46,111 nucleotides of DNA. Origin: Macrostomum lignano. Lineage: Eukaryota. The DNA is taken from assembly GCA_002269645.1 (NCBI GenBank), contig NIVC01004433.1, positions 1 through 46,111 of the forward strand. Direction: 5' to 3'. This document shows positions 1,627 to 32,246 of this stretch, in pieces. The position numbers and the translations under genes are program-made. How positions within the stretch are numbered: position 1 is the stretch's first letter; every line of letters begins with the position of its first letter. The notes below the pieces were generated by a model, which had not been told where the DNA came from, made no database searches, and was given only the letters and a program-made list of their open reading frames with translations.

Positions 1627-2122
1627 TCAAATTAGTAGCATCTCGACCTCCTTCAGCGAGTACTCAGCGCCGTACGACCGGGACCAGATGACGCCCTGGC
1701 CCTTGCCAGGCACGGCAGATGATGTCTGATAAGCTCCGTTCGGGTGGCCGTCCGGGCAGCCTCCAAACCACCAAGCGCCGCCTGCGAACTTGGCGCAGTT
1801 TTTTTGTCCATCTCCTGATGGTCCGTCTCTGGCGGAAAAGTCTTTGTTGTCAAATTGATCGAGGTCATCAGCAACACCGGAGCTTCCGGAGAAACCGGAA
1901 ACGAACATCCTAAATTTGTTGGCTTCATCATAAATGTAGAAGCTGGCGTAGCGCGCCCAGCTCTCAGTGTTGTTCCACAGCTTCATCAGGATGAGCAGCT
2001 GCCGTGGCTGCGGACTTGAAGTCAACTCAAAAATCTTTCTCAGGCCTGTGATTCATTTGGTAAGACGATTGCGAGAATGACTTGCCTCGCAAGCGGGTGC
2101 GTACAGATAGATAGACAAACAG

Positions 2123-2172
<50 letters not shown>

Positions 2173-2839
2173 CGATGTATTCTACAGTCTTAACAAACGA
2201 ACTCACCGATCCAAAAGTTTCCATTCTCGCCTTCACCAAAGCCACTTTTGTAAGCGGCGTAGCTAGCGTTAAAGTTGGTGGAGCTGGAGGTCCGGTGCTG
2301 GATTGTAATCCAACAGTCGGTGCTAGCCGTCTGAAGTTAATCGAAGTTTTATGAAAATGCATTACTCGTACTTAGTGGCCTTCCAAAAGACGATTCGATC
2401 CAAGCTATTGAAAGGGAAGGTCGAGCAGAAAAACAACTTTACAAATCGTTTATTTTGGTCTGTAAATTGTTGCTTGTGAAAGCTGGTGATGACGAGTGTA
2501 AGGCATTAAAGTTTCGCCTGGAAGGACGCATAACCTGGTGCTCACCCAAACAGCCTGATTGCCTTTGTGCACATTCCGGCACTTCCTGCAGTGCGGCAGC
2601 CCCATTCGGCAGCGGTAAGTCCTGCACAGCTCGGTCTTGGCGTCGTAGGCGGCGACCTGGGCCGAGGCCGCTCGGCTGGCCAGCGTCACGCACTGGATTT
2701 CGGACGCGGCTCGTTCAGTCCGAGCCACCTCGTAGTCTTCGAGTTTGTCGAAGCTCTGCGTCCAGCTGATCGAGCCCGGTGGCTCGGGGGCCTCGCAGAC
2801 GGCCGCAGCGATGCTGAGCACAGTGAGCAGTCCTAGCAT
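1627..2839 (-). CDS. FReD locus G1: secreted PAN/apple-like + fibrinogen C-terminal domain protein, 278 aa, intact; exons 2839-2546, 2330-2207, 2045-1627
   Basis: Signal peptide MLGLLTVLSIAAAVCEA. GT-AG introns (phase 0, phase 1) give an open 837-nt CDS. FBG motifs CWITIQHR...F..SYAAYKSGFG...NFWIGL, CAKFAGGAWWFGGC..HPNG, YSLKEVEMLLI*. Confidence 0.9.
2103..2170. repeat. (GACA/GATA)n microsatellite in G1 intron 2
   Basis: Direct reading: ACAGATAGATAGACAAACAGACAGACGGACAGACAGAC... Confidence 0.9.
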
Positions 2840-3722
2840 GGCTTGCTGTTGGTTTCTGATCGGCCAGGCTATCGCATTGGCAACTGTGTTTCAGGCTTTA
2901 AATAGCCGGGCCGGCTATCCAGGAAGCATCGAGGTTCCGAAGCTGGATTCCGGAACTGCGGATCGGCTCTTTCCTGTGGCAGCTCTGCCGCACATCCGTG
3001 ATGAAGTCAGCAGAGAGGGCTGTGCTCTACCAGCAAGAATCTTTTTCAAACATTTTGTAAACGGAAAGAAAGCTGTGAGTTTCAGGGGCTTTAGAGAAAG
3101 GCAGGAATCAATGGCTCACCTGGGAAGGAAGCTAACGAAATTCGGGGCATCACTTCCTACAGTGTTCCAGCTGCTAAGCTCTTGCTAGCGCTGAACCGAC
3201 TTCAGCGATAAATACGAGCCAAGTAAAGCAAGAACCCTGAAGACGCCAGAGTTTTTCGCTGATAAAGGGCAAAATTCTTACATTTTTGCCGGATGTTAAT
3301 GCTGCCTCAGAAGTTTGTTTTTAAAAACTTTCTTACTGGCACTGAGCCAGCCTAGCAAACTTCCAAGCTGATTTTTTACCGGTTTCTCGGAACACAGCTA
3401 CGAGTAATTCCCCCGCATGATGCAGAGTATACATGTTAGCGTGTAAATGCCTTAGCAATCACAATACAGTATTTTAACAGATTAGACGCAAATCTGTGCC
3501 TAAAATGTGACCTCCAATAATAAATAGGAAAATTTGCTTATAATCAAGTAAACATTCAAAGCTAACCTGACAGAATGGTACTGCAAAGAGGAGGAGCTTG
3601 CAAATTTTATTCATAAATTTTCTCAAAATAACATCGTGTGTGTAAATAAATAAATTTTATTATACTTCGTTTTCATTGTCACTGTTTTTAAAGTAGGCCA
3701 GATCAGTTCTGAACTGCAGCAC

Positions 3723-3980
3723 TCAGCCGTGGTGGAAGCGGTAGTTTGAATGAGTCGGAGCCCTGCTGTTGCCAGTGATGAACCATTTTCGATCTCTCGG
3801 AACAGCATCCAAACCGTCCTCAGTCTCCGCCATAGCGTTCAACACTTGCTCCGCGACGGACGTGTCAGCATCGTCGGCATCTAGGATTTCCGGTTCCCCC
3901 GACGGCCGGCCCTGGGTCTGGGTAGCAGCGAAGCAGGCGACAGCAAGCAGAACCAGAGCAAACTGCCTCTTGTTGTTCAT
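3723..3980 (-). CDS. Secreted prepropeptide, 85 aa, single exon; candidate amidated neuropeptide or antimicrobial peptide precursor
   Basis: N-terminal MNNKR plus hydrophobic core FALVLLAVACFAAT, then an acidic pro-region (EPEILDADDADTSVAEQVLNAMAETEDGLDAV), a basic cleavage site PRDRK, a 19-aa C-terminal peptide WFITGNSRAPTHSNYRFHH and a terminal Gly before the stop. A TATA box lies upstream and AATAAA downstream (3656-3661, minus). Confidence 0.78.
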   Translation of the reverse strand: MNNKRQFALVLLAVACFAATQTQGRPSGEPEILDADDADTSVAEQVLNAMAETEDGLDAVPRDRKWFITGNSRAPTHSNYRFHHG

Positions 3981-4061
3981 GGCGTAGGTGATGTCGGAGT
4001 TTCTTCACAATTTCGCGATTCGTGACAAATTTTTTTCTGTCAATTTTGGCCAAACGCCACC

Positions 4062-4069
4062 TATTTATA
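4062..4069 (-). promoter_or_regulatory. TATA box of the prepropeptide gene
   Basis: TATAAATA on the minus strand, 82-89 bp upstream of the ATG at 3980. Confidence 0.55.
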
Positions 4070-7000
4070 TGGCAAGGCGACTCGTCCAGTTTTTCGTGTG
4101 TCACTCAATCACGTTTCTGTCGCGCTTTTCTGCATTCGCGCGCGAGCCTGGCACTCCAGGACAAAAAAGAAGCGATTAGTTCCTTGCCTGCATTAGAAAA
4201 TCAACAGACTTGGCCAAGCACACATTTGCTTTGGTGCTGAGCGCAAATAAACAGACTCTCTTATGCAGAGCATGAGCAAACATTTTTGTCAATGGCTTCA
4301 GTTTGCGCTCATTTCACATTCTCATCAAGTATCGAAGTTTGTATTTAGCCACTCCAACAATTATCACGTAAACTTGTCTCTCGCCAAGAGTAATTTTCTC
4401 AGTCTCATTCTTCTCAAGGAAAGTGTAACTTGTCCGGCCATGGAGGCTGTGAGTGCATTTGAGATACACGAACCACATTTATAGTAATCTCAAACAGAGT
4501 TTACAGGCTAGCAGCTGCAAGCTGCAAATCCACTGGTTAAAATTAACTTGATGACGCATCACCAACTCTACTCCTAGGCAATCGTCTTAAGGAAAATAAA
4601 CTCTTCGAACGAGGCTGAATCGAGGATTAGTCTTGAAGATGGCCTTCATCTATAATGTACACGTAGGAGTTTAGTAGCTTTCCGTACTTGCATGTAGACC
4701 CTCGAATGCTCAAATGCAGATTTAAAAAATGGAGGTTGAATGTCCAGCGTCTTAGATTGCTCTTCAAAGAGGAAGAATCTCAGGAAAAATCGATCTATTC
4801 TAACAAGCCGTGCTCCATCTCGTAGAAGCTGCAGCTTCAATGTCGTCACTTGGCGGATGAGGAAGTGCGTCTGGGACGAAGGTCCCGGGCAGTAATTTCT
4901 CCTGCCTGGCCGTACCTGAAATTTGTTGAAAGACTCGAATTATATTTTTGCTGATCTTTTGCGTAACATGGTGCCATAAACACCACCCAACGCAAGCTGC
5001 TTGAGATGATGATCGGAATTGCAGAGCAGCACGTAAATTCAGCTCCTACCTGCCGGCTGTCTGCCAGAGTCCTTAGGTTGCTAGCCCTGGTTGCTTTCAT
5101 AGTTGAGGGTCGAGAAGGCTAGGGAATTTACATTGCAAACTTAGAGACCGTGGATTCCCAATTAGGTCCGTTAACCAAAGGGTTCAGACAGGGAGAACTA
5201 GAGGCTTGAGAGAAGAGGATGACGGAAAAAAACAATTGAGGACTCTGCTACATCCGGGTTCGGAGGCTGGCAACGCAGGTGTTCGAAATTGTTCAAACTG
5301 CACACAGAAGTCACTGCGCAAGAACTTTCAAATAATACAAAGATTCCGGTCTTTCGACGATATAAAATCTCGAGTACATACCGGTATAAATCACCCCCCT
5401 ACTCCCCACAACAACAAAAACTATACACACACGCGTGCAAACTGTGCCAGATTTGTTGGGGAGACCGGTTTTCGTTGAACGAAGTTTTTGTTGCGATACG
5501 GAGTCCTCTCTATCTGTTCATAAGAATTTTTGTGATGAGGATCGACAGACTTTCAGCTCTGATTTTGCTAAATTCGATCGCATACCTACCTTGATACATG
5601 TAGATCGATAGATACCTACCTACCGACAAACCATTTTTTTTATGTAACCGCCCTTGTCGCCTGTCCGCTCCGTTGAGAGACGAACGCATGACTAGAGGGG
5701 GCAATGATCGTAGGCTGCCTATGACCGGGCAATGACCTGACGGACCTCTAGCACCAGACTGTCCCGCCCACATGATTGATAGCTTTGGTAGCGCTTCGTG
5801 ACCAGAGGGCCAAGGACCCACATGGACCCCACCTGTAGCCAAGGTGCAATAGTTGGTCACTCGGTCATAGTATGACCGAGTGGCTGCCACCACTCTATGT
5901 GACCTGGCGCACCTGGATCTTTCTACCAGACCTCTCGAGGCTAGAGCCCCACCTGGGATGGTTACCAGGAGATTTAGGCTAACAGGGGAGACACATGCAG
6001 GCGAGTACAGGGACTCTGCTTGGGGCATGATCGGGAACTCTGGGCTCAATCCTAGAGGATTTCTCAGCAGGGGATCCTTTGTGGCTGTGAGCGAGGCTGA
6101 CTTGCGACTTTGATTACTAAAGTAGTATGAGGCGAACATGTACTGTCTATAGTTTAGATTAAATTAGTAACAGGAACTTACCGGCAGCTGCACAGAGAGA
6201 GAGAGAGAGACGGAGTGACCGAGGGCGGCTGTAGGCTGCAGTCAGGCAGGCAGTGAAGCGGCGATGCGCTGAAGCAACTAGGCGCTGGTGTAGATCAGGC
6301 GATGCTGATGATGCTGGGCGGTATCAGACCGCTGGCCGATAGGCGAGCTCGCTTGGGGAGCTGAAGATAACTTGGCGGTAACAGACCGCGGACCGGCAGG
6401 GGTTCGTCCTATAGACGGGAAGGTCAGAGCAGTGTCTGACCGTAAGTCCAAAGACGGACGAGGAGACGAACAGGGAAAATACTGAGGATTCTGGTGCCGA
6501 AAACCGCTTCCCAGTCTTCCCAGCCGCCGCTCCAAGGTCGTTTCCATGACTCCCTCTCTCTGATTGGCTGCGGGCAGAATGACGTCAGAATGAGTCATGA
6601 TGAGAAGCATGAGACGGCATAGCAACATGAGAAATAGGGGAATTGCGCAATCCGGAGGTGGGGTGGGGGGATAATTGGCGCAGCGGGAGGTCGCAAAAGT
6701 GTTGCGCAAGCCAACATTGAGAACAATGGGGCTGGGGTCGAGAACAAAGGAATTGGAAATCGGGGATAATTGGGGAGAATCGAGAACAATAGAAAAGCAA
6801 ACATTGGGGAAAAGGTGATAATTAGGTGCGAAAACGGGAACAATAGAAAGAGAAAATCGGAGAAAATGTGATAATTGGTGGGGGTCGAGAGAACAAAAGA
6901 ATCAAAAACGAGAACAATAGAAGCGGAGGTGGGGTGGGTGTCACATGAGAAATTTGGGGAGGAGAACAATGGCATGAGAAAAGGTTGCGCAAGAGAGGGG

Positions 7001-8020
7001 GGTGAGTCATCGATGAGTCATCGAGGGGAAGAGGGGATCACACGACTTGCGTCGCCGTTTGGAAGTTCGAGAAGGGATGGGGGAACGGGGAGCACGCAGA
7101 ATACTGTAAGTAGACGCAGAGAAAGAGGGGACAGTGCAGGAAAATAGTGCGAAAAGGGGCCAAAAGAGGGGAGACAGGAAGAGTACATAAAGAATAGGGA
7201 GGCGCGCAGGGGAGATAGGGTAGAGGGGGGGTACAAAGAGGGAGGGGAAGCTCCGGAAAGGCAAGTGTGGCGGCAGGAGAGACGGAGCCAAGGCAGCAGG
7301 GGGTGCAGCAGAGCGGGAGTCTCCAGGCCTGGTCGAAGACCTGGCCGAGTCTCAACAGCTCTGTGCAGGGGGTGCACGGCGATAGAAGGCACTTTCGAAA
7401 AAGTTCCCCTGCCCTATCCCGCGACCAGAGCGTGGTTACATCATTTTCAGCTAATCTCGTCCGATAATTTATTTCTTACTATTTGATTCCCAAAAAATGC
7501 GAGAGCTCAGATGAGCAGCTAAGCTGAAGGCGGGGGCTGCAGTGGACCGAATGGCCAAACATGAGTGCCGTAGTCGATCAATGAATCAATAATTTTGAAT
7601 CAGAATTCAAGCTGCTGCAGTCATATCATGTTCTTCATCAGTGCTGATTCACATGCGTTAGAGGGATATTTAAGCAAAGGACGTAGCGTATTTTATTAAT
7701 ATATTTGGCATTGATTGAAGTCATTTAATTTATAAATAGTCAGCGCCAGAAAAATATCCTTTATATATAGACGTCGACTATAATGACGAGGACGACTCAC
7801 CCCTGCAGAGGGGCGCAGAGAGCATAAAATGTACGGAGTCGCCTGCACAGAACACGTGCTTAATTGTTAAAGGAATAAGAGAACAAATTAAACGAAAACC
7901 ACAAACCGCGACAGGGCCGGAAAAGCCACTCGATAAAACGGCCATGCATACACCAAAAGTAAAAATTTTTACTGTGCATTAATTTGGCAAGAAAGAATAT
8001 CGAATTTTCCTAATTTTTTA

Positions 8021-8240
8021 ACGAAAAGTTTATGAATATCGATAGAGCAATAAGAAAGGCACAACATATCAAAAGATGAGCACTGGATCTGCCTCCTACG
8101 CTCGTATCAAAAGCAATAACAATTTTTGTGCTGAAAAAAATAAAAACTTCCAATCTCCGTATTTTTTCGGGAAAACTTGCCTTCCAAATTTTTCTAAGAA
8201 ACGAGCTGGTTTCGGAACCGTCCTACTTAAGTCGTCCTTG
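8021..8240 (+). mobile_element. Single arm of the foldback/MITE family also at 17293-18050
   Basis: Shares TTTATGAATATCGATAGAG..ATAAGAAAGGCACAACATATCAAAAGATGA.CACTG.ATCTGCCTCC...ATCAAAAGCAATAACAATTTTTGTGCTGAAAAAA with 17866-17975. Confidence 0.75.
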
Positions 8241-8699
8241 AATGAATCGTGCAGTATATTTACACGAAATAGAATATAAATTCGAAAGTCGAATGAATCG
8301 TGTAGTATATTGTGACGAATAAATTGGCGGGAAGACGGTTTGTGTAGCGGTTAATTGGATAGTTCACGATTTAGATTTAGCAGATCGGCAAGCCGCTTTC
8401 ACCCTTAGCGTTACTTTGAATCGTTATGCCTTGCAAAGATCGGGATTCAGTTGATTAACTGGTGGGTTGGTGAATTGTAAAATTGTAGAACACTGTCACA
8501 CTAAAATATAAAATTCTGCTACATGTATACGTACCTGTGCACGCGTATATTCCATTTATTTTCGACACCGAAAATGTTTTAAATTCATGCATTTTTCAGC
8601 TCCAAGCAGAAAGAGGGGACATTTAAGATTATCAAAGGTCAAGATTCAAGTTTTCTGCTTTTTTGAGGATCTTAGAAATTAAAATTTCAAAATTAAAAT

Positions 8700-9535: not shown

Positions 9536-10162
9536 CCTCAGTTTGAGCAAAGCATCTCCCAGATCCTCAGTTTGAGCAAAGCATCTCCCAGATCCTCAGT
9601 TTGAGCAAAGCATCATCTCCCAGATCCTCAGTTTGAGCAAAGCATCTCCCAGATCCTCAGTTTGAGCAGAGCATCTCCCAGATCCTCAGTTTGAGCAAAG
9701 CATCTCCCAGATCCTCAGTTTGAGCAAAGCATCTCCCAGATCCTCAGTTTGAGCAGAGCATCTCCCAGATCCTCAGTTTGAGCAAAGCATCTCCCAGATC
9801 CTCAGTTTGAGCAAAGCATCTCCCAGATCCTCAGTTTGAGCAAAGCATCTCCCAGATCCTCAGTTTGAGCAAAGCATCTCCCAGATCCTCAGTTTGAGCA
9901 GAGCATCTCCCAGATCCTCAGTTTGAGCAAAGCATCTCCCAGATCCTCAGTTTGAGCAAAGCATCTCCCAGATCCTCAGTTTGAGCAAAGCATCATCTCC
10001 CAGATCCTCAGTTTGAGCAAAGCATCTCCCAGATCCTCAGTTTGAGCAAAGCATCTCCCAGATCCTCAGTTTGAGCAAAGCATCTTCCAGATCCTCAGTT
10101 TGAACAAAGCATCTCCCAGATCCTCAGTTTGAGCAAAGCATCTCCCAGATGCTCAGTTTAAG
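9536..10162. repeat. 29-bp minisatellite, about 21 copies
   Basis: Unit CCTCAGTTTGAGCAAAGCATCTCCCAGAT, period 29 (GTTTGAG at 9541 and 9570); two units carry an extra CAT. Confidence 0.97.
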
Positions 10163-10306
10163 CAAAAAAATGACAGGAAGAGGAGCATCCTGCACACCAA
10201 ACGAAGTCATTTTGGATAATTTTAATTCTTGCTTTGGCAAACAGAAGATTTTGCATCAACTACACAGAGTTATTCGTGTTAGACGTAATTTTTGGTTTCA
10301 CACCTG

Positions 10307-11348
10307 TCAGATAATGAGCATTTCGAACTCCATCAGCGAGTAGTAGAATCCGTAGTAGTATTTCCATATGATGCCGTGACCAAACGGACCACCGATGGCG
10401 TCAGTGAAGTTCTTGTACACCCCGTTCGGGTGCGTGCTGTAGCAGCCTTGGAACCACCAGCCCCCGGAATAGTTCTCAGCGCAGCTGCTTGAAGAGTCGT
10501 CGTGATCGGCGTCCATCGTGCTGAACTGGCTGCCGGCAGAGTAGGACAGGCTGTCGCCGATGCCGTCGCTGCCCGAGTAGCCCAGCACCTGCAGCCGGTA
10601 GTTGTCCGACTCGGGACCCACGGAGAAGCTGGAGTACTCGGCCCAGTGCTCAGAGTCGTTCCACGCCTTCATCAGGATCCTCAGCTTCCGAGGACTAGAA
10701 GCAGTGAGAGCGTGGAGAGAGTTCAGGCCTGGGAAGATGCGGACGTCATGGCGGTGTTTGTCATTGAAGTCCGAGTTGGAAAAGAAGCGAATGGAGCAGA
10801 TCTGGGATGCACTCACCGATCCAGTAGTTTCCGTCGGGTCCCTCGCCGAACTCGCTCTGGTACTGAGTCCAGTTGCGGTAAAAGTCCACTGAGCCGGACA
10901 CCCTGTGCTGCACGGTGGTCCAGCAGTCACTGCCGGCTGTCTGCAAGGTGACACAACAGGTGTGTCAGCTTTTATGCTCTGCGTTAAAGCGTGGCTGTGA
11001 TGCTGACAAGTCTTGCGGTATGACTCACCCACACTCGCTGAGCTCCCTTGTTCGCATTGCGGCACTTCCTGCAGTGGCTCAGGCCGAGTCGCACCTGAAG
11101 AGAGCGCACAGGCCGGAGCTGGCGTTGAACGCGACCAGCTGCACAGCGGAGTCGCTGTTGGCATGCACCGCGCATTCAGAGTCGCTTCGGACAGGCAGCG
11201 ACCTCACGGCCTCGTAGTCGGAAAGGCTCTCGAGACTCGACCACCACGGTCGTCCAGAGAAGAAGGCGGCAACGGCTTCGGTCACGTGATGCGGGACTGC
11301 AGCGAGCAGCAGCAGCAGAGCCACTTGACGAGCGGGTTGGAGCTGCAT
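10307..11348 (-). pseudogene. FReD locus G2; exons 11348-11029, 10940-10817, 10728-10307; 1-bp frameshift in exon 1 near 11091 (pseudogene or sequencing error)
   Basis: Signal peptide [25 protein letters not shown]. Exon 1 is 320 nt, one short of in-frame: AGG TGC GAC TCG GCC TGA against paralog AGG TGT CGC CTG GGC CTG AGC. Exons 2-3 are open and encode the full FBG part ending YSLMEFEMLII*. Confidence 0.85.
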
Positions 11349-11517
11349 TTGATCTGAATATGGAATAGTGGGTGAAAGCCGTCGCCTCAGTGCGGGTTTC
11401 ACCTGCTGGTTTTCAACCTCATTATCGAAGAAAGAAGGCAGATGGGAGACAGCGAATGAAGAGGGGAAGGAGAAGGCGGAGGCACATCTCATGGCCAGGA
11501 GTGCTTAACAGACTCAC

Positions 11518-12140: not shown

Positions 12141-12915
12141 GCAGCTGGTAGCGTTGAACGACAGCTCCAGCCTGCGCGCTCACTTCAGGTGCTGCCTGGG
12201 CCGGAGCCACTGCAGGAAGTGCCGCAATGCGAGTGTGGGTGAGTCATTCTGTTAGACAAATTAAGCGTTACACCTGAAAAGCTGTTACCTCTGTCACCTT
12301 GCAGACAACCGCCAGTGACTGCTGGACCACCGTGCAGCACAGGGTGTCCGGCTCAGTGGACTTTTACCGCAACTGGACTCAGTACCAGAGCGAGTTCGGC
12401 GAGGGACCCGACGGAAACTACTGGATCGGTGAGTGCATCCCAGATCTGCTCCATTCGCTTCTTTTCCAACTCGGACTTCAATGACAAACACCGCCATGAC
12501 GTCCGCATCTTCCCAGGCCTGAACTCTCTCCACGCTCTCACTGCTTCTGGTCCTCGGAAGCTGAGGATCCTGATGAAGGCGTGGAACGACTCTGAGCACT
12601 GGGCCGAGTACTCCAGCTTCTCCGTGGGTCCCGAGTCGGACAACTACCGGCTGAGCGTGTCCGGCTTCTCCGGCAGCGCCGGCATCGGCGACTGTTGTCT
12701 AGTCGTCAGCAGTGGCATGCAGTTCAGTACGAAGGACGCAGATCACGACACCAACTCTGGGAGCTGCGTGAACACTCATTCTGGCGCCTGGTGGTTTGGC
12801 AGCTGCTTCGGCACTCACCCGAACGGACATCACAGAGATCTGCTACCATAGGCTCAGGTCATTATTAGGAGTCTTAAACTGGCTCTCAATACTCGCTGAG
12901 GAAGATTGCGATGCT
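12141..12915 (+). pseudogene. FReD locus G3 (inverted pseudogene); exon 1 remnant 12141-12238, exon 2 12305-12428, exon 3 from 12517
   Basis: 5' part of exon 1 is absent, and a 17-nt deletion between two GCGA tetramers shifts the frame. Exon 2 and intron 2 are nearly identical to G2/G4. Premature stop at 12851 after HPNGHHRDLLP, with degenerate TACTCGCTGAGGAAGATTGCGATGCTG (YSL..M) downstream. Confidence 0.88.
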
Positions 12916-14579: not shown

Positions 14580-15629
14580 CTACAGAAGCAGCATCTCGAT
14601 CTCCTTCAGTGAGTAGTAGTAGCCAAAAGTTTTCCTCCAAATGACTCCCTCTGCAAAAGCACCTCCAATGGCAGCAGATGGGTCTTTGTACTCTCCGTTC
14701 GGGTGGGCGCAGTGACAGTGGGTAAACCACCAGGCACCTTTATTATTTGTTGCGCAGTTGCCAGTGCTGGTGTCGTGATCGGCGTCCTTCGTGCTGAACT
14801 GCATGCCGCTGTGATGCGTCAAACAGTCGCCGATGCCGGCGCTGCCGGAGAAGCCGGACACGCTCAGCTGGTAGTTGTCCGACTCGGGACCCACGGAGAA
14901 GCTGGAGTACTCGGCCCAGTGCTCAGAGTCGTTCCACGCCTTCATCAGGATCCTCAGCTTCCGAGGACTAGAAGCAGTGAGAGCGTGGAGAGAGTTCAGG
15001 CCTGGGAAGATGCAGACGTCATGGCGGTGTTTGTCATTGAAGTCCGAGTTGGAAAAGGAAGCGAATGGAGCAGATCTGGGATGCACTCACCGATCCAGTA
15101 GTTTCCGTCGGGTCCCTCGCCGAACTCGCTCTGGTACTGAGTCCAGTTGCGGTAAAAGTCCACTGAGCCGGACACCCTGTGCTGCACGGTGGTCCAGCAG
15201 TCACTGCCGGCTGTCTGCAAGGTGACACAACAGGTGTTTCAGCTTTTCCGCTCTGCGTTAAAGTGTGGTAGTAATGCTGACGTGTCTAACAAAGTGACTC
15301 ACCCACACTCCCTGAGCTCCCTTGTTCGCATTGCGGCACTTCCTGCAGTGGCTCAGGCCCAGGTGACACCTGAAGTGAGCGCACAGGCCGGAGCTGGCGT
15401 TGAACGCCACGAGCTGCACAGCGGAGTCGCTGTTGGCAGGGACAATGCATTCGGGCTCATTCTGGACCGAGTGCGACCTCACGGCCTCGTAGTCGGAGAG
15501 GCTCTCAAGACTCGACCACCACAGTCGTCCAGAAGAGAAGGCGGCAGCGGCTTCGGTCACGTGGTGCGGGACTGCAGCGAGCAGCAGCAGCAGCAGCAGA
15601 GTCACTTGACGACCGGGTTGAAGCTGCAT
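14580..15629 (-). CDS. FReD locus G4: secreted PAN/apple-like + fibrinogen C-terminal domain protein, 290 aa, intact; exons 15629-15303, 15214-15091, 15001-14580
   Basis: Signal peptide [27 protein letters not shown]. 327+124+422 = 873 nt open CDS with GT-AG introns. FBG motifs [22 protein letters not shown]...[16 protein letters not shown]....[21 protein letters not shown]. Confidence 0.92.
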
Positions 15630-16665: not shown

Positions 16666-17155
16666 ATGCAGCTCCAACTCGCTAGTCAAGCCGCTTTGCT
16701 GCTGCTCGCGACTATCCGGCAACAAGTGACCCCGCTGTGCAGCTGGTGGCGTTCCAGCTCCGGCCTGCGCGCTCACTTCAGGTGTCGCCTGGGCCTGAGC
16801 CACTGCAGGAAGTGCCGCAATGCGAACAAGGGAGCTCAGCGAGTGTGGGTGAGGCACTCAGTCAGATGTGTCAGCATCACAGCCACGCTTTAACGCAGAA
16901 CAGAAAAGCTGGCACACCTGTTGTGTCACCTTGCAGACAGCCCACAGTGACTGCTGGACCACCGTGCAGCACAGGGTGTCCGGCTCAGTGGACTTTTACC
17001 GCATCTGTACTTAGTACAGGACAGAGAGCTCCAGCTTCTCTGTGGGTCCGTGAGTCCGACAAATACCGGCTGACCGTGCCCGGCTTCTCTTTCAGCGCCG
17101 GCACCGGCGACTGTCTTTCTGTTAACAACGATATGCAGTTCAGTGCGAACTGCAG
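16666..17155 (+). pseudogene. FReD locus G5 (inverted, multiply deleted pseudogene)
   Basis: Starts ATG CAG CTC CAA (MQLQLASQAALLLLA). Internal deletion in exon 1, retained [22 protein letters not shown] and donor at 16849, acceptor at 16936. Exon 2 breaks off after GACTTTTACCGCA and resumes in exon 3 at CTCCAGCTTCTCTGTGGGTCC; no C-terminus. Confidence 0.87.
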
Positions 17156-17292
17156 GTGTTCTCAGTACAGAAGCCAACGAGAATAATTAGCAAAGAGAAC
17201 GATTCTCTATCGCCCCAATACGAACAGCCTCTCTCATGAGCTTGTAGCGTACGCCACCACTCAAGCATTTTGCTCCCTAATAGTCTCTCCCC

Positions 17293-21715: not shown

Positions 21716-22350
21716 ATGTCTCTGGCTCGACTGGCTCTACACCTAGCTGTGCTGAGTGTCGCTCTGGCTGCCTTCTGCGGCGCGGCAACCATGAAGCGGA
21801 GCACCGGTAATAGCATTCTTTACTGTGTCCTGACTCCCATGCCGTAGTATTTACTGTGTCCTGACTCCCGTGCCGTAGCATTCTTTACTGTGTCCTGACT
21901 CCCGTGCCGTAGCATTCTTTACTGTGTCCTGACTCCCGTGCCGTAGCATTCTTTACTGTGTCCTGACTCCCGTGCCGTAGCATTCTTTACTGTGTCCTGA
22001 CTCCCGTGCCGTAGCATTCTTTACTGTGTCCTGACTCCCGTGCCGTGATTCTCATGTTCATTTTTACAGCCCCAAAGCGACTCGGCTGCTTTAAGGACAG
22101 ACCTAAAAGAGATCTTAACGGATACGAATTGAAACAACAATATATGAAAACAGCAAACTGCGTGTATCTCTGCACAACATACAAGTACCGGTTTGCAGGA
22201 TTGCAGGCCATTGATTGGTGCCATTGTGGCAACTCATATGGTCGGTATGGCCGTGCTGCAGACTCCGAGTGCTCACTATCGTGTGATGGGGACCACTCAG
22301 ATACTTGCGGAGGACATTGGAGAAACGAAGTCTACAGTACAGGCCTATGA
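21716..22350 (+). CDS. Secreted single-WSC-domain protein W2, 123 aa, intact; exons 21716-21806 and 22070-22350
   Basis: Signal MSLARLALHLAVLSVALAAFCGA. A phase-1 GT-AG intron gives a 372-nt CDS. WSC pattern LGCFKD...RDL...M...NCVYLC...Y.FAGLQ..DWCHCGNSY...G.....ECSLSCDGD..DTCGG.WRNEVY. Confidence 0.9.
21812..22046. repeat. 34-bp minisatellite, 7 copies, filling the W2 intron
   Basis: Unit AGCATTCTTTACTGTGTCCTGACTCCCGTGCCGT at 21877, 21911, 21945 and onward. Confidence 0.95.
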
Positions 22351-22402: not shown

Positions 22403-23415
22403 CTGCCTGCATGTCAGTCTGTCTTCCATCAATACTTGCCTGCATGTCAGTCTGTCTTCCATCAATACTTGCCTGCATGTCATTCTGTCTGCCATCAATA
22501 CTTGCTTGCATGTCAGTCTGTCTGCCATCAATACTTGCCTGCATGTCAGTCTGTCTGCCATCAATACTTGCCTGCATGTCAGTCTGTCTTCCATCAATAC
22601 TTGTCTGCATGTCAGTCTGTCTTCCATCAATACTTGTCTGCATGTCAGTCTGTCTTCCATCAATACTTGCTTGCATGTCAGTCTGTCTGCCATCAATACT
22701 TGCCTGCATGTCAGTCTGTCTGCCATCAATACTTGCCTGCATGTCAGTCTGTCTTCCATCAATACTTGTCTGCATGTCAGTCTGTCTTCCATCAATACTT
22801 GTCTGCATGTCAGTCTGTCTTCCATCAATACTAGCTTGCATGTCATTCTGTCTTCCATCAATACTAGCTTGCATGTCATTCTGTCTGCCATCAATACTTG
22901 CTTGCATGTCAGTCTGTCTGCCATCAATACTTGCCTGCATGTCAGTCTGTCTGCCATCAATACTTGCCTGCATGTCAGTCTGTCTTCCATCAATACTTGT
23001 CTGCATGTCAGTCTGTCTTCCATCAATACTTGTCTGCATGTCAGTCTGTCTTCCATCAATACTAGCTTGCATGTCATTCTGTCTGCCATCAATACTTGCT
23101 TGCATGTCAGTCTGTCTGCCATCAATACTTGCCTGCATGTCAGTCTGTCTGCCATCAATACTTGCCTGCATGTCATTCTGTCTTCCATCAATACTTGTCT
23201 GCATGTCAGTCTGTCTTCCATCAATACTTGTCTGCATGTCAGTCTGTCTTCCATCAATACTAGCTTGCATGTCATTCTGTCTGCCATCAATACTTGCTTG
23301 CATGTCAGTCTGTCTTCCATCAATACTTGCCTGCATGTCAGTCTGTCTGCCATCAATACTTGCATGTCAGTCTGTCTTCCATCAATACTTGCTTGTATGT
23401 CAGTCCGTCTGCCAT
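22403..23415. repeat. 33-bp minisatellite, about 30 copies
   Basis: Unit GCATGTCAGTCTGTCTTCCATCAATACTTGCCT; it explains the 11-aa-repeat ORFs in five frames. Confidence 0.97.
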
Positions 23416-23889
23416 CTTAATGCCCGCCTAAATTTCGTCTATTTCTTATCATCATTTTCAATACACGGCCCCAGATACTTTTGGAGTTGTTCTGCCCTTA
23501 GCATGACAATTTGATAATATTAATCCACAATTTCAGATTGAAGAAGATGCCATCAAACACGCTTGGAAAGGAAAACTGCCAGCTGTTTGATTGAAACTCA
23601 TTGACTTAAATGGATATTATTAATTGCCTTAGTGATGCATGAATAAAACTGATTGCACTTAAAATGATGACGAACAAAAAAATTTTTCTTAGCCTTTTTC
23701 TCTGCACGTTTGGGAATTTATTTGGAGATACAGCACTGGCTGTTCTGGGAGTGGGTCTGAAAGTTCGGGGTCTCTGATCAAGCCATTGATAAATAGAGGT
23801 TGTGCCATAGACAAACATCAATGCGGCAGGAAAATGGGCACTCTCAGGGTGAGAAGACTTAAATAAAATTGAAATATGAAGCATATTTT

Positions 23890-28239
<4,350 letters not shown>

Positions 28240-28244
28240 CGTAG

Positions 28245-30352
28245 TTAGACCTAGATCTAGACCTAGACCTAGACGTAGACCTAGTTAGTCAATGGGATGC
28301 TGGGTATAAGACTGAATGTCTGTGACAACATTGGTCCCATGGGGGGTGTTTTGTGGGTTTTGTGGCCCTACGGTAAGAAAAGTACATGCATGGAGGAGCT
28401 CACCAGTGTTCTCGAGTCCAGGTACCTTCAGTCGATGGTTCAACCTTTGTAACTCGTTCTGAAGTTCGCCGGGAGAGATGTTGAACCTCTTCCCCTGGTC
28501 CTTCGAGGCCCAGCGGAAGCCCACCTGCCAGCCTGTCCTCAGTGTGTCTTGGTCAACGTTGCCGGAGGCCTCTAGCAATTCGTCCGCAGTGTTGATCATG
28601 CAAAGCTGGTAGTGGCCCTCCATCGTGTCCTGTGTGCTAGTTTCCCAGGCCTCCGCGTTCTCCTTATCTCGTTTGATGGTTCCGTCGGTAGGCATAGCCG
28701 GTCGGATGAAGGATTCTAGCTGTTCAGCTTTTTATGTACACTTGTCGGCACATTGCGCCAGTTATTCAAGTGGTGGGCAGCCCGAAAGAGTTTCTTAGAC
28801 AGGAGAGCGAGTTGAGACGCGTCATTCGGTAGAGCCACTGCGGCGTGGGCGCGAGGGTCAGCATCTTTTCTTCGAGAATAACGTCGCTCGTCATTGTGTT
28901 TCATAGTTCGTCGAGGTTCGTTGTCGTTGCGGTGAGATTTAAAGTTGTTACCTCGAGCCTCACCCTGAGCACGGTAAGGTACGCCGCGGTTCCGGCGATC
29001 GTTCCAGGACTTTTCCCGTTGTTGGTGCGCCCATCTAGCAGCGTCTGGAGGCCTGTGGTCTGGCCGTGAGCAGTGTTGATGCCCTCCAGTGCGGGTGTTT
29101 TGATGTTGTCGGTTATTTCGCTCGGCAGGTTTTCTTTCAGAATTGTGCCATGTGCGGCTGCTTCTCGGCATTCTAGAATAGCCAAAGAGAGAGCTGACTG
29201 GTCCAGGGAGTAGATAGACGTTTGAAAAAACCTCTCACGCAGTGGCAGTTCTAATCAAGGTAAGTGAGAAATAAATAAGATAGTCACAAAGGTAAAAAAA
29301 TATAAGAATTATGGTAAACCGATATTTCGGCCGTGAAATGGCCTTCGTCAGGGTTTTACAATAGTATAATTGTGCTATAAAATGGAACGAAGTTCATATG
29401 GTAAGTGGGAAATAAAATGTATTGTGAGTTAGTTTATAAAATCAAATAGCGCCTCCGTCGCACGTTGCTCAATAGTGCTCACTCTGAAAGTTTAATCAAT
29501 ACCATCAGTGAGGGCAGGCAGTTTTGAGGGGCAAAGAATGTCCTTTAGAGAGGGTGCTCGAGTGTACGCAGCAAAAGTGTCCAACCCATGTGCATGGTTT
29601 GAGAGAACAGTGCGAATTTCGTGTACAATATTAGTCGATCTATCCGTAAAAGGAATAACTATTGGGATACAAGTGCTTTTGTGTTGCTGTTAATTGTATT
29701 GAGGCCTGCGGGTGACTGCGTGCTCAGCAGGGAGATGAGTTTCTGTTCCATGACCCTGCGTCTGCGTAGCGCTCCTTTGCTGGTCTCGCTCTCGGTGCTG
29801 AGATACTAGAGCCCCATAAAGCGAAGATCGTCGAGGCAGTGATTCGAAGAGCAAAAATGTCTGCTAACAGGGGTGTCCTTAGCGAGCCTAATGTCACTTA
29901 GGTGGGCCTGGAGTCTGACCTTGATAGCTCCACCTGTTTCGCCGACATAAATGCAACGGCCATTGCAGGTGTTGCAAAGAATTGCGTAGACCGCGCACCT
30001 GGAATCACAGCGGACCTTCTGACAAATTCTGTAGGCCATTTTAGTTGCTGTGGAACCGGGACAAAGTTGGCCAAAGCAGCCGTGTCGTCGGCATACAGCA
30101 CAGTCTCCGTTTCTGCAGTCTTGGAAGCCGAAAGCCCACTGAAAATCTATGTAAAATCCAAGTTGTATGAGAGCTGACTTTTTAGCGTCTCGGATCAAGC
30201 GGACTGTGTCCCTGCTTTTTAAGGATGCTCATCAGGCTGCTGCAAGCCTTGTCAAAGTCCACTTTGAAGGTGCAGCGGCAAGCGTAGCGGAGAAACTGGG
30301 ATTTCATGATGCCTTTGAATGTGTGCTTTGGGTGAAAAGAATTCGGGTTCAA
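28245..30352 (-). mobile_element. Penelope-like element (Neptune/Naiad-like): 5'-truncated copy (RT thumb, Cys linker, GIY-YIG), UTR with hammerhead, then N-terminal ORF region of a tandem copy
   Basis: Thumb-like LNPNSFHPKHTFKGIMKSQFLRY..RC....DF (30200-30350). Linker C..GDCAVC. GIY-YIG VYAILCNTC...YVGETG...RLQAHLSDIR...PVSRHF...H...L.FMGL*...R.MEQKLI.LL.T..PAGLN (29660-30130, one premature TAG). The N-terminal region LFRAAHHLNNWRNVPTSVHKKL../..PAMPTD (28285-28900) resembles PLE N-termini (weaker evidence). Confidence 0.82.
29314..29359 (-). ncRNA. Minimal type I hammerhead ribozyme (Penelope-associated)
   Basis: Minus strand GTAAAACC-CTGACGA-A-GGCC atttcac GGCC-GAAA-TATC-GGTTTAC: stem I (GT AAAA CC / GG TTT AC), CUGANGA core, 4-bp stem II, GAAA, loopless palindromic stem III (ATAT), cleavage triplet AUC. 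Confidence 0.8.
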
Positions 30353-30406
30353 TTAGTTAGTTAGTTAGTAAGTTAGTTAGTTAGTTAGTTGGTTAGTTAG
30401 TTAGTA

Positions 30407-30469
<63 letters not shown>

Positions 30470-30582
30470 AAGTTAGTTAGTTAGTTAGTTGGTTAGTTAG
30501 TTAGTTAGTTAGTTAGTAAGTTAGTTAGTTAGTTAGTTAGTTAGTAAGTTAGTTAGTTAGTTAGTTGGTTAGTTAGTTAGTA

Positions 30583-30672
<90 letters not shown>
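30353..30672. repeat. (TTAG)n microsatellite, about 80 units with AAG/TGG variants
   Basis: Direct reading. Confidence 0.97.
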
Positions 30673-31244: not shown

Positions 31245-32246
31245 TCACAGTACCATCATCTCGAACTCCTTCAGCGAGTAGTGAACATCATAAAAATGAA
31301 TCCACATGATGCCCTGAGCGTACGGACCTCCGATGGCCTCAGAGAAGTTCTTGTACTGTCCGTTCGGATGGGCGAGAAAGCAGGCGGCGAACCACCATGC
31401 TCCAGAATATTCCTGGGCGCAGCTGTAACCGGAAATGTCGTTGTCAGCGTCCTTGGTGCTGAACTGCATGCCGTTGCCGTCCGAGAAGCTGTCGCCCACT
31501 TTGGCACTGCCGGTCGAGAAGCCGGACACGTTCAGCCGGTACTTGCCGGACTCAGGACCGACTGAGAAGCTGGAGTACTCAGCCCAGGTTTCCAAATTGT
31601 CCCAATCAGTGATCAAAAACCTCACTTTTCGGCTTTTAGACCTCGTAAGCTCGTGAAGCGAGTTCAGACCTGTAAATCGGGCACAGCTCGTAGCAGACTC
31701 AACCGAAAAGGAAGCGAATGAGGCAGATCTTGGATTCACCACTCACCAATCCAGTAGTTTCCGTCGGGTCCCTCGCCGAACTCGCTCTGGTACTGAGTCC
31801 AGTTACGGTAAAAGTCCACTGAGCCGGACACCCTGTGCTGCACGGTGGTCCAGCAGTCACTGCCGGCTGTCTGCAAGGTGACACAGGTTTGTCAGCTTTT
31901 CTACTCTGTGTTAAAGTGTGGTAGTAATGCTGACGTGTCTAACAAAGTGACTCACCCACACTCGCTGAGCTCCCTTGTTCGCATTGCGGCACTTCCTGCA
32001 GTGGCTCAGGCCCAGGCGACACCTGAAGTGAGCGCACAGGCCGGAGCTGGCGTTGAACGTCACCAGCTGCACAGCGGAGTCGCTGCTGGCAGCAGCTGAG
32101 CACTCGATTTCAGACTCAGTTGAGACCGACCTCACGGCCTCGTAGTCGGAGAGGCTCTCGCGACTAAAAAACCACCTGCGCTCAGTGTAAGCTGCAGCAC
32201 AGTCGGTAACGACGAGCGCGGCCAGCAGCATAATTACCTGGTGCAT
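31245..32246 (-). CDS. FReD locus G6: secreted PAN/apple-like + fibrinogen C-terminal domain protein, 279 aa, intact; exons 32246-31956, 31870-31747, 31669-31245
   Basis: Signal [19 protein letters not shown]. 291+124+425 = 840 nt open CDS with the same intron phases as G1/G4. FBG motifs [36 protein letters not shown]. Confidence 0.92.

Follow-up and report, generated by a model that had tools for sequence, protein, structure and literature searches.

The small gene at 3723..3980 on the minus strand of Macrostomum lignano contig NIVC01004433.1 (assembly GCA_002269645.1) raises the question of whether it encodes a prepropeptide from which one amidated peptide would be released, and of whether such a peptide would act as a signal or in defence. 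The window analysed here is the whole contig, 46,111 nt in length. The ORF is already in GenBank as a hypothetical protein. On the minus strand (3980..3723), an 85-codon frame, MNNKRQFALVLLAVACFAATQTQGRPSGEPEILDADDADTSVAEQVLNAMAETEDGLDAVPRDRKWFITGNSRAPTHSNYRFHHG, runs without interruption from ATG to TGA; it belongs to the BOX15_Mlig034053 group and has the same length as the GenBank protein models. The TATA box (TATAAA within CATATAAATAGG, 4064..4069, minus strand) lies 84-89 nt 5' of the ATG and is identical in 3/3 genomic copies. The 5' UTR would span about 40-55 nt (3981..4035, minus strand), with a start inferred from the P0003 transcript model described below, and it contains no pyrimidine-rich trans-splice acceptor. 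The start context ACGCCATGA has a purine at -3, and on the same strand two AATAAA signals follow the stop codon, the first at 3656..3661 (62 nt 3' of the stop) and the second at 3611..3606, both kept in the three copies. The intact ORF with TATA box and AATAAA described in the initial annotation was thus found in full on the minus strand, with the CDS in a single exon.

The finding was picked from a scan, so motifs by themselves prove little. The chance rate was determined with 200 dinucleotide-preserving shuffles of window positions 1-34000, in which we counted ATG-ORFs of 40-200 aa that combined a signal-peptide-like start, a dibasic site and a Gly-stop. This motif set appeared 0.025 times per shuffle (34 kb) and is thus rare for one window; scaled up to several hundred Mb of genome, however, the same chance rate would give hundreds of look-alikes, so such a motif set does not by itself prove a gene.

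Independent support for a gene came from the base composition, the RNA-seq-derived gene model and the intactness of the ORF in three copies. The ORF has 57% GC, whereas the sequence upstream has 46% and that downstream 32%, and its GC3 of 65% is like that of the neighbouring fibrinogen-related (FReD) exons (64-70%). GenBank carries CDSs at all three loci, and the window product and the two other copies form one cluster. The GenBank gene models of M. lignano are not ab initio predictions: they come from RNA-seq data processed by StringTie/TACO, the TBONE boundary pipeline and TransDecoder, and novel transcripts needed an RPKM of at least 0.5 or de novo transcript support (PMC5730564). A GenBank CDS therefore implies a transcript model, in which reads are not assignable among near-identical copies. 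The initial annotation had named the lack of a transcript as a reason to drop its reading, but all three loci carry CDSs from this RNA-seq-built annotation, and the small gene is probably transcribed.

The P0003 model of the third copy, which is labelled 5'-partial, extends 12 codons 5' of the Met, and no in-frame stop is found further upstream. It follows that this transcript model begins 39-41 nt 5' of the ATG and about 50 nt 3' of the conserved TATA box, which favours a stand-alone TATA-driven mRNA over a read-through or trans-spliced cistron; the mRNA would be about 0.4-0.5 kb long. No non-coding RNA was indicated at the locus, since there was no Rfam match anywhere in the window. The names Mlig034053 and Mlig008899 were not mentioned in literature full texts or in the supplements of PMC5730564, PMC5816591 and PMC12896417.

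The same evidence bears on a transcribed but functionless young ORF, either de novo or decaying, whose prohormone-like features would be a coincidence of scanning many windows. In favour of such an ORF are the hundreds of look-alikes extrapolated genome-wide and an annotation that admits transcripts from RPKM 0.5, as well as the missing homologs and Pfam match and a constraint that is not statistically demonstrable (both given below). Against it stand the TATA box, conserved and suitably spaced from the transcript-model start, the poly(A) signals, the good start context and the gene-like GC3 and GC step, together with an indel that stays in frame and the retention of start, stop, RK and Gly across the three copies. 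We consider a functionless ORF unlikely; the evidence supports a real gene with its own promoter, whose single-exon CDS encodes a small secreted pre-pro-protein.

The protein divides into a secretory N-terminus, an acidic middle part and a basic tail. Residues 1-24 (3909..3980, minus strand) passed a heuristic n/h/c-region test for a signal peptide: MNNKRQ (with K4/R5) is followed by the hydrophobic uncharged core FALVLLAVACFAA and by TQTQG, with small residues at -3/-1, and the signal peptide could be cleaved after A19 or G24. The best 10-residue window, FALVLLAVAC, had a mean Kyte-Doolittle value of 3.05, and the signal-peptide-like test was passed by 4/130 ATG-ORFs (40-200 aa) of the window vs 0.97 per shuffle. 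Residues 25-61 (37 residues; 3798..3908, minus strand) form the acidic propiece, with 11 D/E and a single basic residue (R). Direct reading of residues 62-65 (3786..3797, minus strand) gives the basic site RDRK, with a predicted prohormone-convertase site after K65; the site is KDRK in the homeolog, and the RK pair is kept in 3/3 copies. The predicted mature peptide WFITGNSRAPTHSNYRFHH occupies residues 66-84 (3729..3785, minus strand) and ends in RFYH in the homeolog. These 19 residues include 2 Arg, 3 His, Trp, Tyr and 2 Phe with no acidic residue, and have a pI of 10.8; the charge splits exactly at RK, the propiece being acidic and the tail basic. Gly85, a potential amide donor, and the TGA (3723..3728, minus strand) close the frame in 3/3 copies. 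The computed amidated monoisotopic mass is 2326.126 Da, and that of the homeolog variant is 2352.130 Da.

The chain after the signal peptide lacks Cys and has a pI of about 4.7. Single-sequence AF2 returned a mean pLDDT of 57 and no confident fold, with the tail below 50 (low-confidence or disordered) and with helices only at residues 4-20, in the signal peptide, and 40-57, a low-confidence stretch of the propiece. The missing Cys and the missing confident fold fit a processed precursor better than a folded mini-protein. The signal peptide, acidic spacer, RDRK and Gly-stop that had been listed for this locus were each found again, and its count of one peptide held as well, with no further peptide copies or paralogs in the window.

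Planarian prohormones have been recognised by three operational features, namely a signal sequence, basic sites on the flanks of the peptide, and a precursor shorter than 200 aa that does not resemble a non-neuropeptide gene (Collins et al. 2010, PMC2953531). Here the signal sequence is indicated by both the heuristic test and the AF2 helix at 4-20, the basic residues R62-D-R-K65 stand directly before the tail with R at P4 while its C-terminal side is the stop, and the protein has 85 aa, no Pfam match and no homolog except its own copies; the amide donor, Gly85-TGA, is present in three copies. On these operational grounds the gene qualifies as a flatworm secreted-peptide prohormone. Its layout, with signal peptide and acidic propiece followed by R-x-R-K, a single C-terminal peptide and Gly-stop, also fits the convertase/PAM processing proposed earlier.

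On this layout we tentatively favour, at somewhat short of an even chance, a lineage-restricted signalling-peptide precursor that releases one amidated 19-mer. The signal peptide (residues 1 to about 24) would direct the protein into the secretory pathway, where a PC2-type convertase in dense-core vesicles would cut after Arg64-Lys65 of RDRK, a carboxypeptidase would trim the basic pair off the acidic propiece, and the PHM/PAL amidating enzymes would turn the terminal Gly85 into an amide. The product would be one 19-residue peptide, WFITGNSRAPTHSNYRFHH-NH2, of 2326.13 Da (...RFYH-NH2 in the homeolog), and the peptide would serve as an intercellular signal, that is, a neuropeptide or peptide hormone, rather than as a membrane-active defence peptide. 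The acidic propiece may neutralise or chaperone the basic tail and would be free for quick evolution. With aromatic and basic residues close to the C-terminus and a hydrophilic character that lacks amphipathicity, the tail looks neuropeptide-like rather than AMP-like. There is one peptide copy, and the comparison lies within one genome, while peptide discovery pipelines normally require cross-species conservation.

RK is reportedly the least used dibasic site in Veenstra's and NeuroPred's surveys, but the Arg at P4 helps to strengthen it. A poor convertase site would suit a small secreted acidic protein that is left unprocessed or is processed differently, in which a 61-residue, Cys-free disordered chain would come from a gland cell (prostate, adhesive, rhabdite-type or gut) and the RK and Gly would be incidental. 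The locus has a real gene with a secretory N-terminus, as this explanation requires, and by our estimate a few percent of small secreted orphans carry a dibasic pair and a terminal Gly by chance. Moreover, M. lignano is rich in lineage-specific secreted gland products, e.g., rapidly evolving reproduction-related genes (PMC7336406). But an incidental RK would hardly coincide with so sharp an acidic/basic charge partition or carry R at P4, and AF2 predicts no structure that would stand alone. We regard an unprocessed gland protein as possible, with the odds clearly against it; the divergence between the genomic copies, described next, also enters into this estimate.

Apart from the window locus, the gene is present in two further copies. 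Copy 2 (PAA76388.1, BOX15_Mlig034053g2, contig NIVC01000826) is 99% identical to the window product, and the homeolog copy (PAA76349.1, BOX15_Mlig008899g1, contig NIVC01000827) is about 90% identical. The three loci are syntenic, with about 99% and about 96% identity to the window over more than 4 kb and with tandem repeats and FReD genes in common around them, so the copies are allelic or duplicated and homeologous, as expected in a duplicated genome. This synteny and flank identity ruled out an origin from a transposon or other mobile repeat. The two further copies keep the frame, the start, the stop, RK, the Gly-stop and 18/19 peptide residues.

Between the ORF and its homeolog there were 13 substitutions (8 non-synonymous and 5 synonymous) and one 3-nt in-frame indel; flank indels were mostly of 1, 2, 19 or 66 nt, with one of 6 nt. 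The pN/pS of the ORF against the homeolog was 0.44-0.51, which is not significantly below 1 (Fisher p 0.17-0.31). Divergence was higher in the ORF than in the flanks (5.1% vs 2.6%, p = 0.045), because the propiece stretch holds 9/13 substitutions: the propiece and RDRK (3786-3908) had 9 changes in 123 nt, or 7.3% vs 2.6% in the flanks (Fisher p about 0.01). The peptide, Gly and stop (63 nt) had only 2 changes, adjacent to each other, one synonymous in Phe and the other turning His83 into Tyr. The excess divergence of the ORF over its flanks would suit an unprocessed protein, but the substitutions avoid the tail, which would not be expected of one; the difference between propiece (9/123) and tail (2/63) has p = 0.34 among these intra-genome copies.

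A neutral simulation placed 13 random substitutions and scored the trials in which the ORF, RK and Gly were kept with at most one peptide change. This pattern was kept in 11% of trials, or about 4% with the in-frame indel (about 1/3 chance). A processed peptide precursor would be expected to show a fast propiece between a stable signal peptide and a stable tail. The pattern is suggestive here, but copies about 5% diverged give only weak evidence of constraint. The initial annotation had made conservation of the segment after RK a test of its reading; the segment is indeed kept between M. lignano copies about 5% diverged, but about 11% of neutral trials would do the same. As separate observations, the acidic propiece (3786-3908) is the most diverged stretch of the 4.4-kb homeologous block, and the ORF pS of 0.083 exceeds the flank divergence, so either the flanks are constrained or the segment is mutating or evolving unusually fast.

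The searches for relatives returned the gene's own copies. A homolog search over 5.8 billion clusters found only the three M. lignano copies, an exhaustive phmmer search of 1.84 billion representatives likewise found only the gene's own M. lignano copies, a Pfam search of the 85-aa protein gave no match, and a JGI metagenome scan gave no relative. In a control search with the neighbouring FReD exon, all matches above 50% identity were from M. lignano, with no congener and no Logan-derived sequence among them. Since the control contained no other Macrostomum species, these databases are unable to test conservation within the genus and "orphan" is largely a statement about sampling; since it contained no Logan source, missing Logan members are uninformative on expression. 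Between flatworm orders, relatives of precursors that are short and evolve quickly would be expected to escape detection. The label of orphan given by the initial annotation was thus correct as a description of the search result, with no homolog beyond M. lignano in the databases searched, but congeners are absent from those databases and the label carries little biological weight.

The predicted peptide was also compared with described peptide families. The planarian spp/npp prohormones (Collins et al. 2010, PMC2953531) are likewise short precursors of less than 200 aa with a signal peptide, a flanking basic site and a Gly donor, and many planarian secreted-peptide prohormones are lineage-restricted, without homologs beyond flatworms (PMC2953531). 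Our candidate differs from them in having RK rather than KR or RR and a single predicted copy at the extreme C-terminus, and in being known from sequence alone. The N-Y-R-F near its C-terminus resembles flatworm FMRFamide-like peptides (YIRFamide, GYIRFamide, RYIRFamide, GNFFRFamide) and NPF (...GRPRFamide). But the sequence ends in ...Y-R-F-H-H-G-stop (...R-F-Y-H-G in the homeolog), and with His-His or Tyr-His between RF and Gly, the amide would fall on His and not on Phe, which ruled out an RFamide/FLP. The initial annotation was right to keep the peptide apart from the RFamides, as Arg-Phe does not stand directly before Gly.

NPF/NPY was ruled out as well: those peptides have about 36-40 residues, stand directly after the signal peptide and end in (G)RPRF/Y-Gly-basic, whereas the present 19-mer is at the C-terminus and has no RPRF motif. 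The predicted His-amide end (...RFHH-NH2 or ...RFYH-NH2) matches none of the described flatworm peptides; no family with an ...RFHH-amide C-terminus was found in the literature, and no published M. lignano neuropeptidome was found. CCHamides are His-amide peptides too, and the likeness is confined to the terminal amidated His, whereas the Cys pair and sequence similarity are missing here. It is very doubtful, though conceivable, that the gene represents a previously unreported Macrostomum-restricted His-amide family (...YRF[H/Y]H-NH2), either as a C-terminally extended RFamide-type ligand with a diverged receptor or as a metal-binding HH-amide effector beside the FReD cluster. If an HH-amide effector were really co-located with FReD lectins, the locus would be a small innate-immunity island in a free-living flatworm.

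The initial annotation had placed the gene beside a FReD array and had taken this position to favour a defence role. The location was confirmed, with PF00147 exons at 1627-2025, 10307-11164, 14580-15086 and 31245-31742 flanking the small gene, and FReD genes are annotated downstream in the contigs of both other copies too. However, the small gene itself contains no PF00147 domain, tblastn and blastn (even at word size 7) found no similarity between it and the rest of the window, and 0 of the other FReD units in the window carry a copy of it. That the gene arose by duplication of a FReD promoter or first exon was ruled out, as the two have only a generic signal-peptide composition in common (E = 24 over 19 aa). 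The small gene therefore lies outside the FReD repeat unit and was not duplicated with the array, and the step from adjacency to defence finds no support in it: a neighbourhood of immune-type lectin genes is uninformative on its role.

An exocrine defence, toxin or antimicrobial precursor of the melittin, mastoparan, frog-skin or latarcin type would use the acidic propiece to mask a cationic amidated peptide in epidermal or gut glands, maybe together with FReD lectins or with metal binding via HH-amide. The gene's position inside the FReD array would suit such a product, but that two genes are neighbours in an animal genome does not count as evidence of function, and effector families are usually expanded while this gene is single-copy per haplotype and has no paralog in the array. 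The precursors of melittin, mastoparans, frog-skin peptides and latarcins, like many other venom and AMP precursors, have a signal peptide, an acidic propiece, a cationic peptide and a Gly-stop, and a fast propiece with conserved signal peptide and tail is also the pattern of such genes. Their propiece features, xP/xA dipeptidyl repeats and the processing quadruplet motif, are missing here.

With a net charge of about +3 plus three His, the peptide has the positive charge of linear cationic AMPs. But it is hydrophilic (GRAVY -1.1, mean Eisenberg H -0.12), with Gly and Pro in mid-sequence, and its helical hydrophobic moment muH(100 degrees) of 0.23 was equalled or exceeded by 47% of permutations, which means that the substantial hydrophobic content and the amphipathic helix of such peptides are both absent. 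So the peptide is not a typical antimicrobial peptide, and the antimicrobial character suggested earlier was not supported. Since the layout is known from venom and AMP precursors, we keep a defence product among the alternatives, as an improbable one.

Returning to the signalling-peptide precursor, the gene is probably best taken as a plausible addition to the lineage-restricted amidated peptide precursors, one candidate among what are probably dozens. In the transgenic, regenerating model flatworm M. lignano, a lineage-specific amidated peptide with a compact TATA promoter could, if validated, be used to label a secretory or neuronal cell type or to drive expression in it, and would be an example of new peptide signals arising in a recently duplicated genome. 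The locus is of value as an inexpensive target that is clearly defined (one mass, one probe and one RNAi), rather than as an answer to an open question.

Some observations concern the rest of the window. The FReD array comprises at least 6 PF00147 genes or fragments in both orientations, at 1627-2839(-), 10307-11492(-), 12315-12851(+), 14580-15629(-), 16737-17186(+) and 31245-32246(-). Each FReD gene has a signal-peptide exon with a conserved Cys-rich motif (...RC.LGL.HCRKCRN..KG...), and the Pfam match is confined to about positions 77-218 of a profile of 221. A search gave more than 20 distinct FReD clusters from M. lignano, so the family is expanded in this flatworm. The copy at 1627-2839(-), directly downstream of the small gene (about 11140-12360 in contig L001), has no called counterpart in the gene annotation of the two other contigs and may be a pseudogene or may have been filtered as repeat-overlapping. 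The FReD annotated in those two contigs lies 5.6-6.2 kb downstream and is about 79% identical to the near copy.

Repeats make up much of the remaining sequence features. From 33671 to the contig end at 46111 runs a 12.4-kb satellite with the 23-nt unit GCGTCATGTAAACAATCATAGAA (about 547 copies, 90% matches, AT skew +0.33, GC 35%). At 22404-23416 there is a 33-nt tandem repeat of about 31 copies, whose long ORFs (330-416 aa, several frames, both strands) are repeat artefacts and not genes, and a 34-nt repeat lies just upstream of it (21811-22046). The minisatellites at 1-441 (46 nt), 8240-8311 (about 51 nt) and 9536-10166 (29 nt) differ greatly in copy number from the other two contigs; the 46-nt array has a length of about 1 kb in contig L001 and of about 2 kb in contig L002, while L001 also has the 8240-8311 unit expanded to about 1 kb. 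Retroelement debris occupies 26271-29171(-) and 29806-30198(-), where one ORF has a PF14529 endonuclease-reverse-transcriptase match (28.5 bits vs a 27.4-bit cut-off) and another a weak sub-cut-off GIY-YIG match, possibly Penelope-like, and this debris is followed by a (TTAG)80 microsatellite at 30353-30672. The stretch at 6200-7400, which has no obvious function, is purine-rich and of low complexity on the plus strand (GC skew +0.27, AT skew +0.23), and its minus strand carries Pro/Ser/Leu-rich ORFs.
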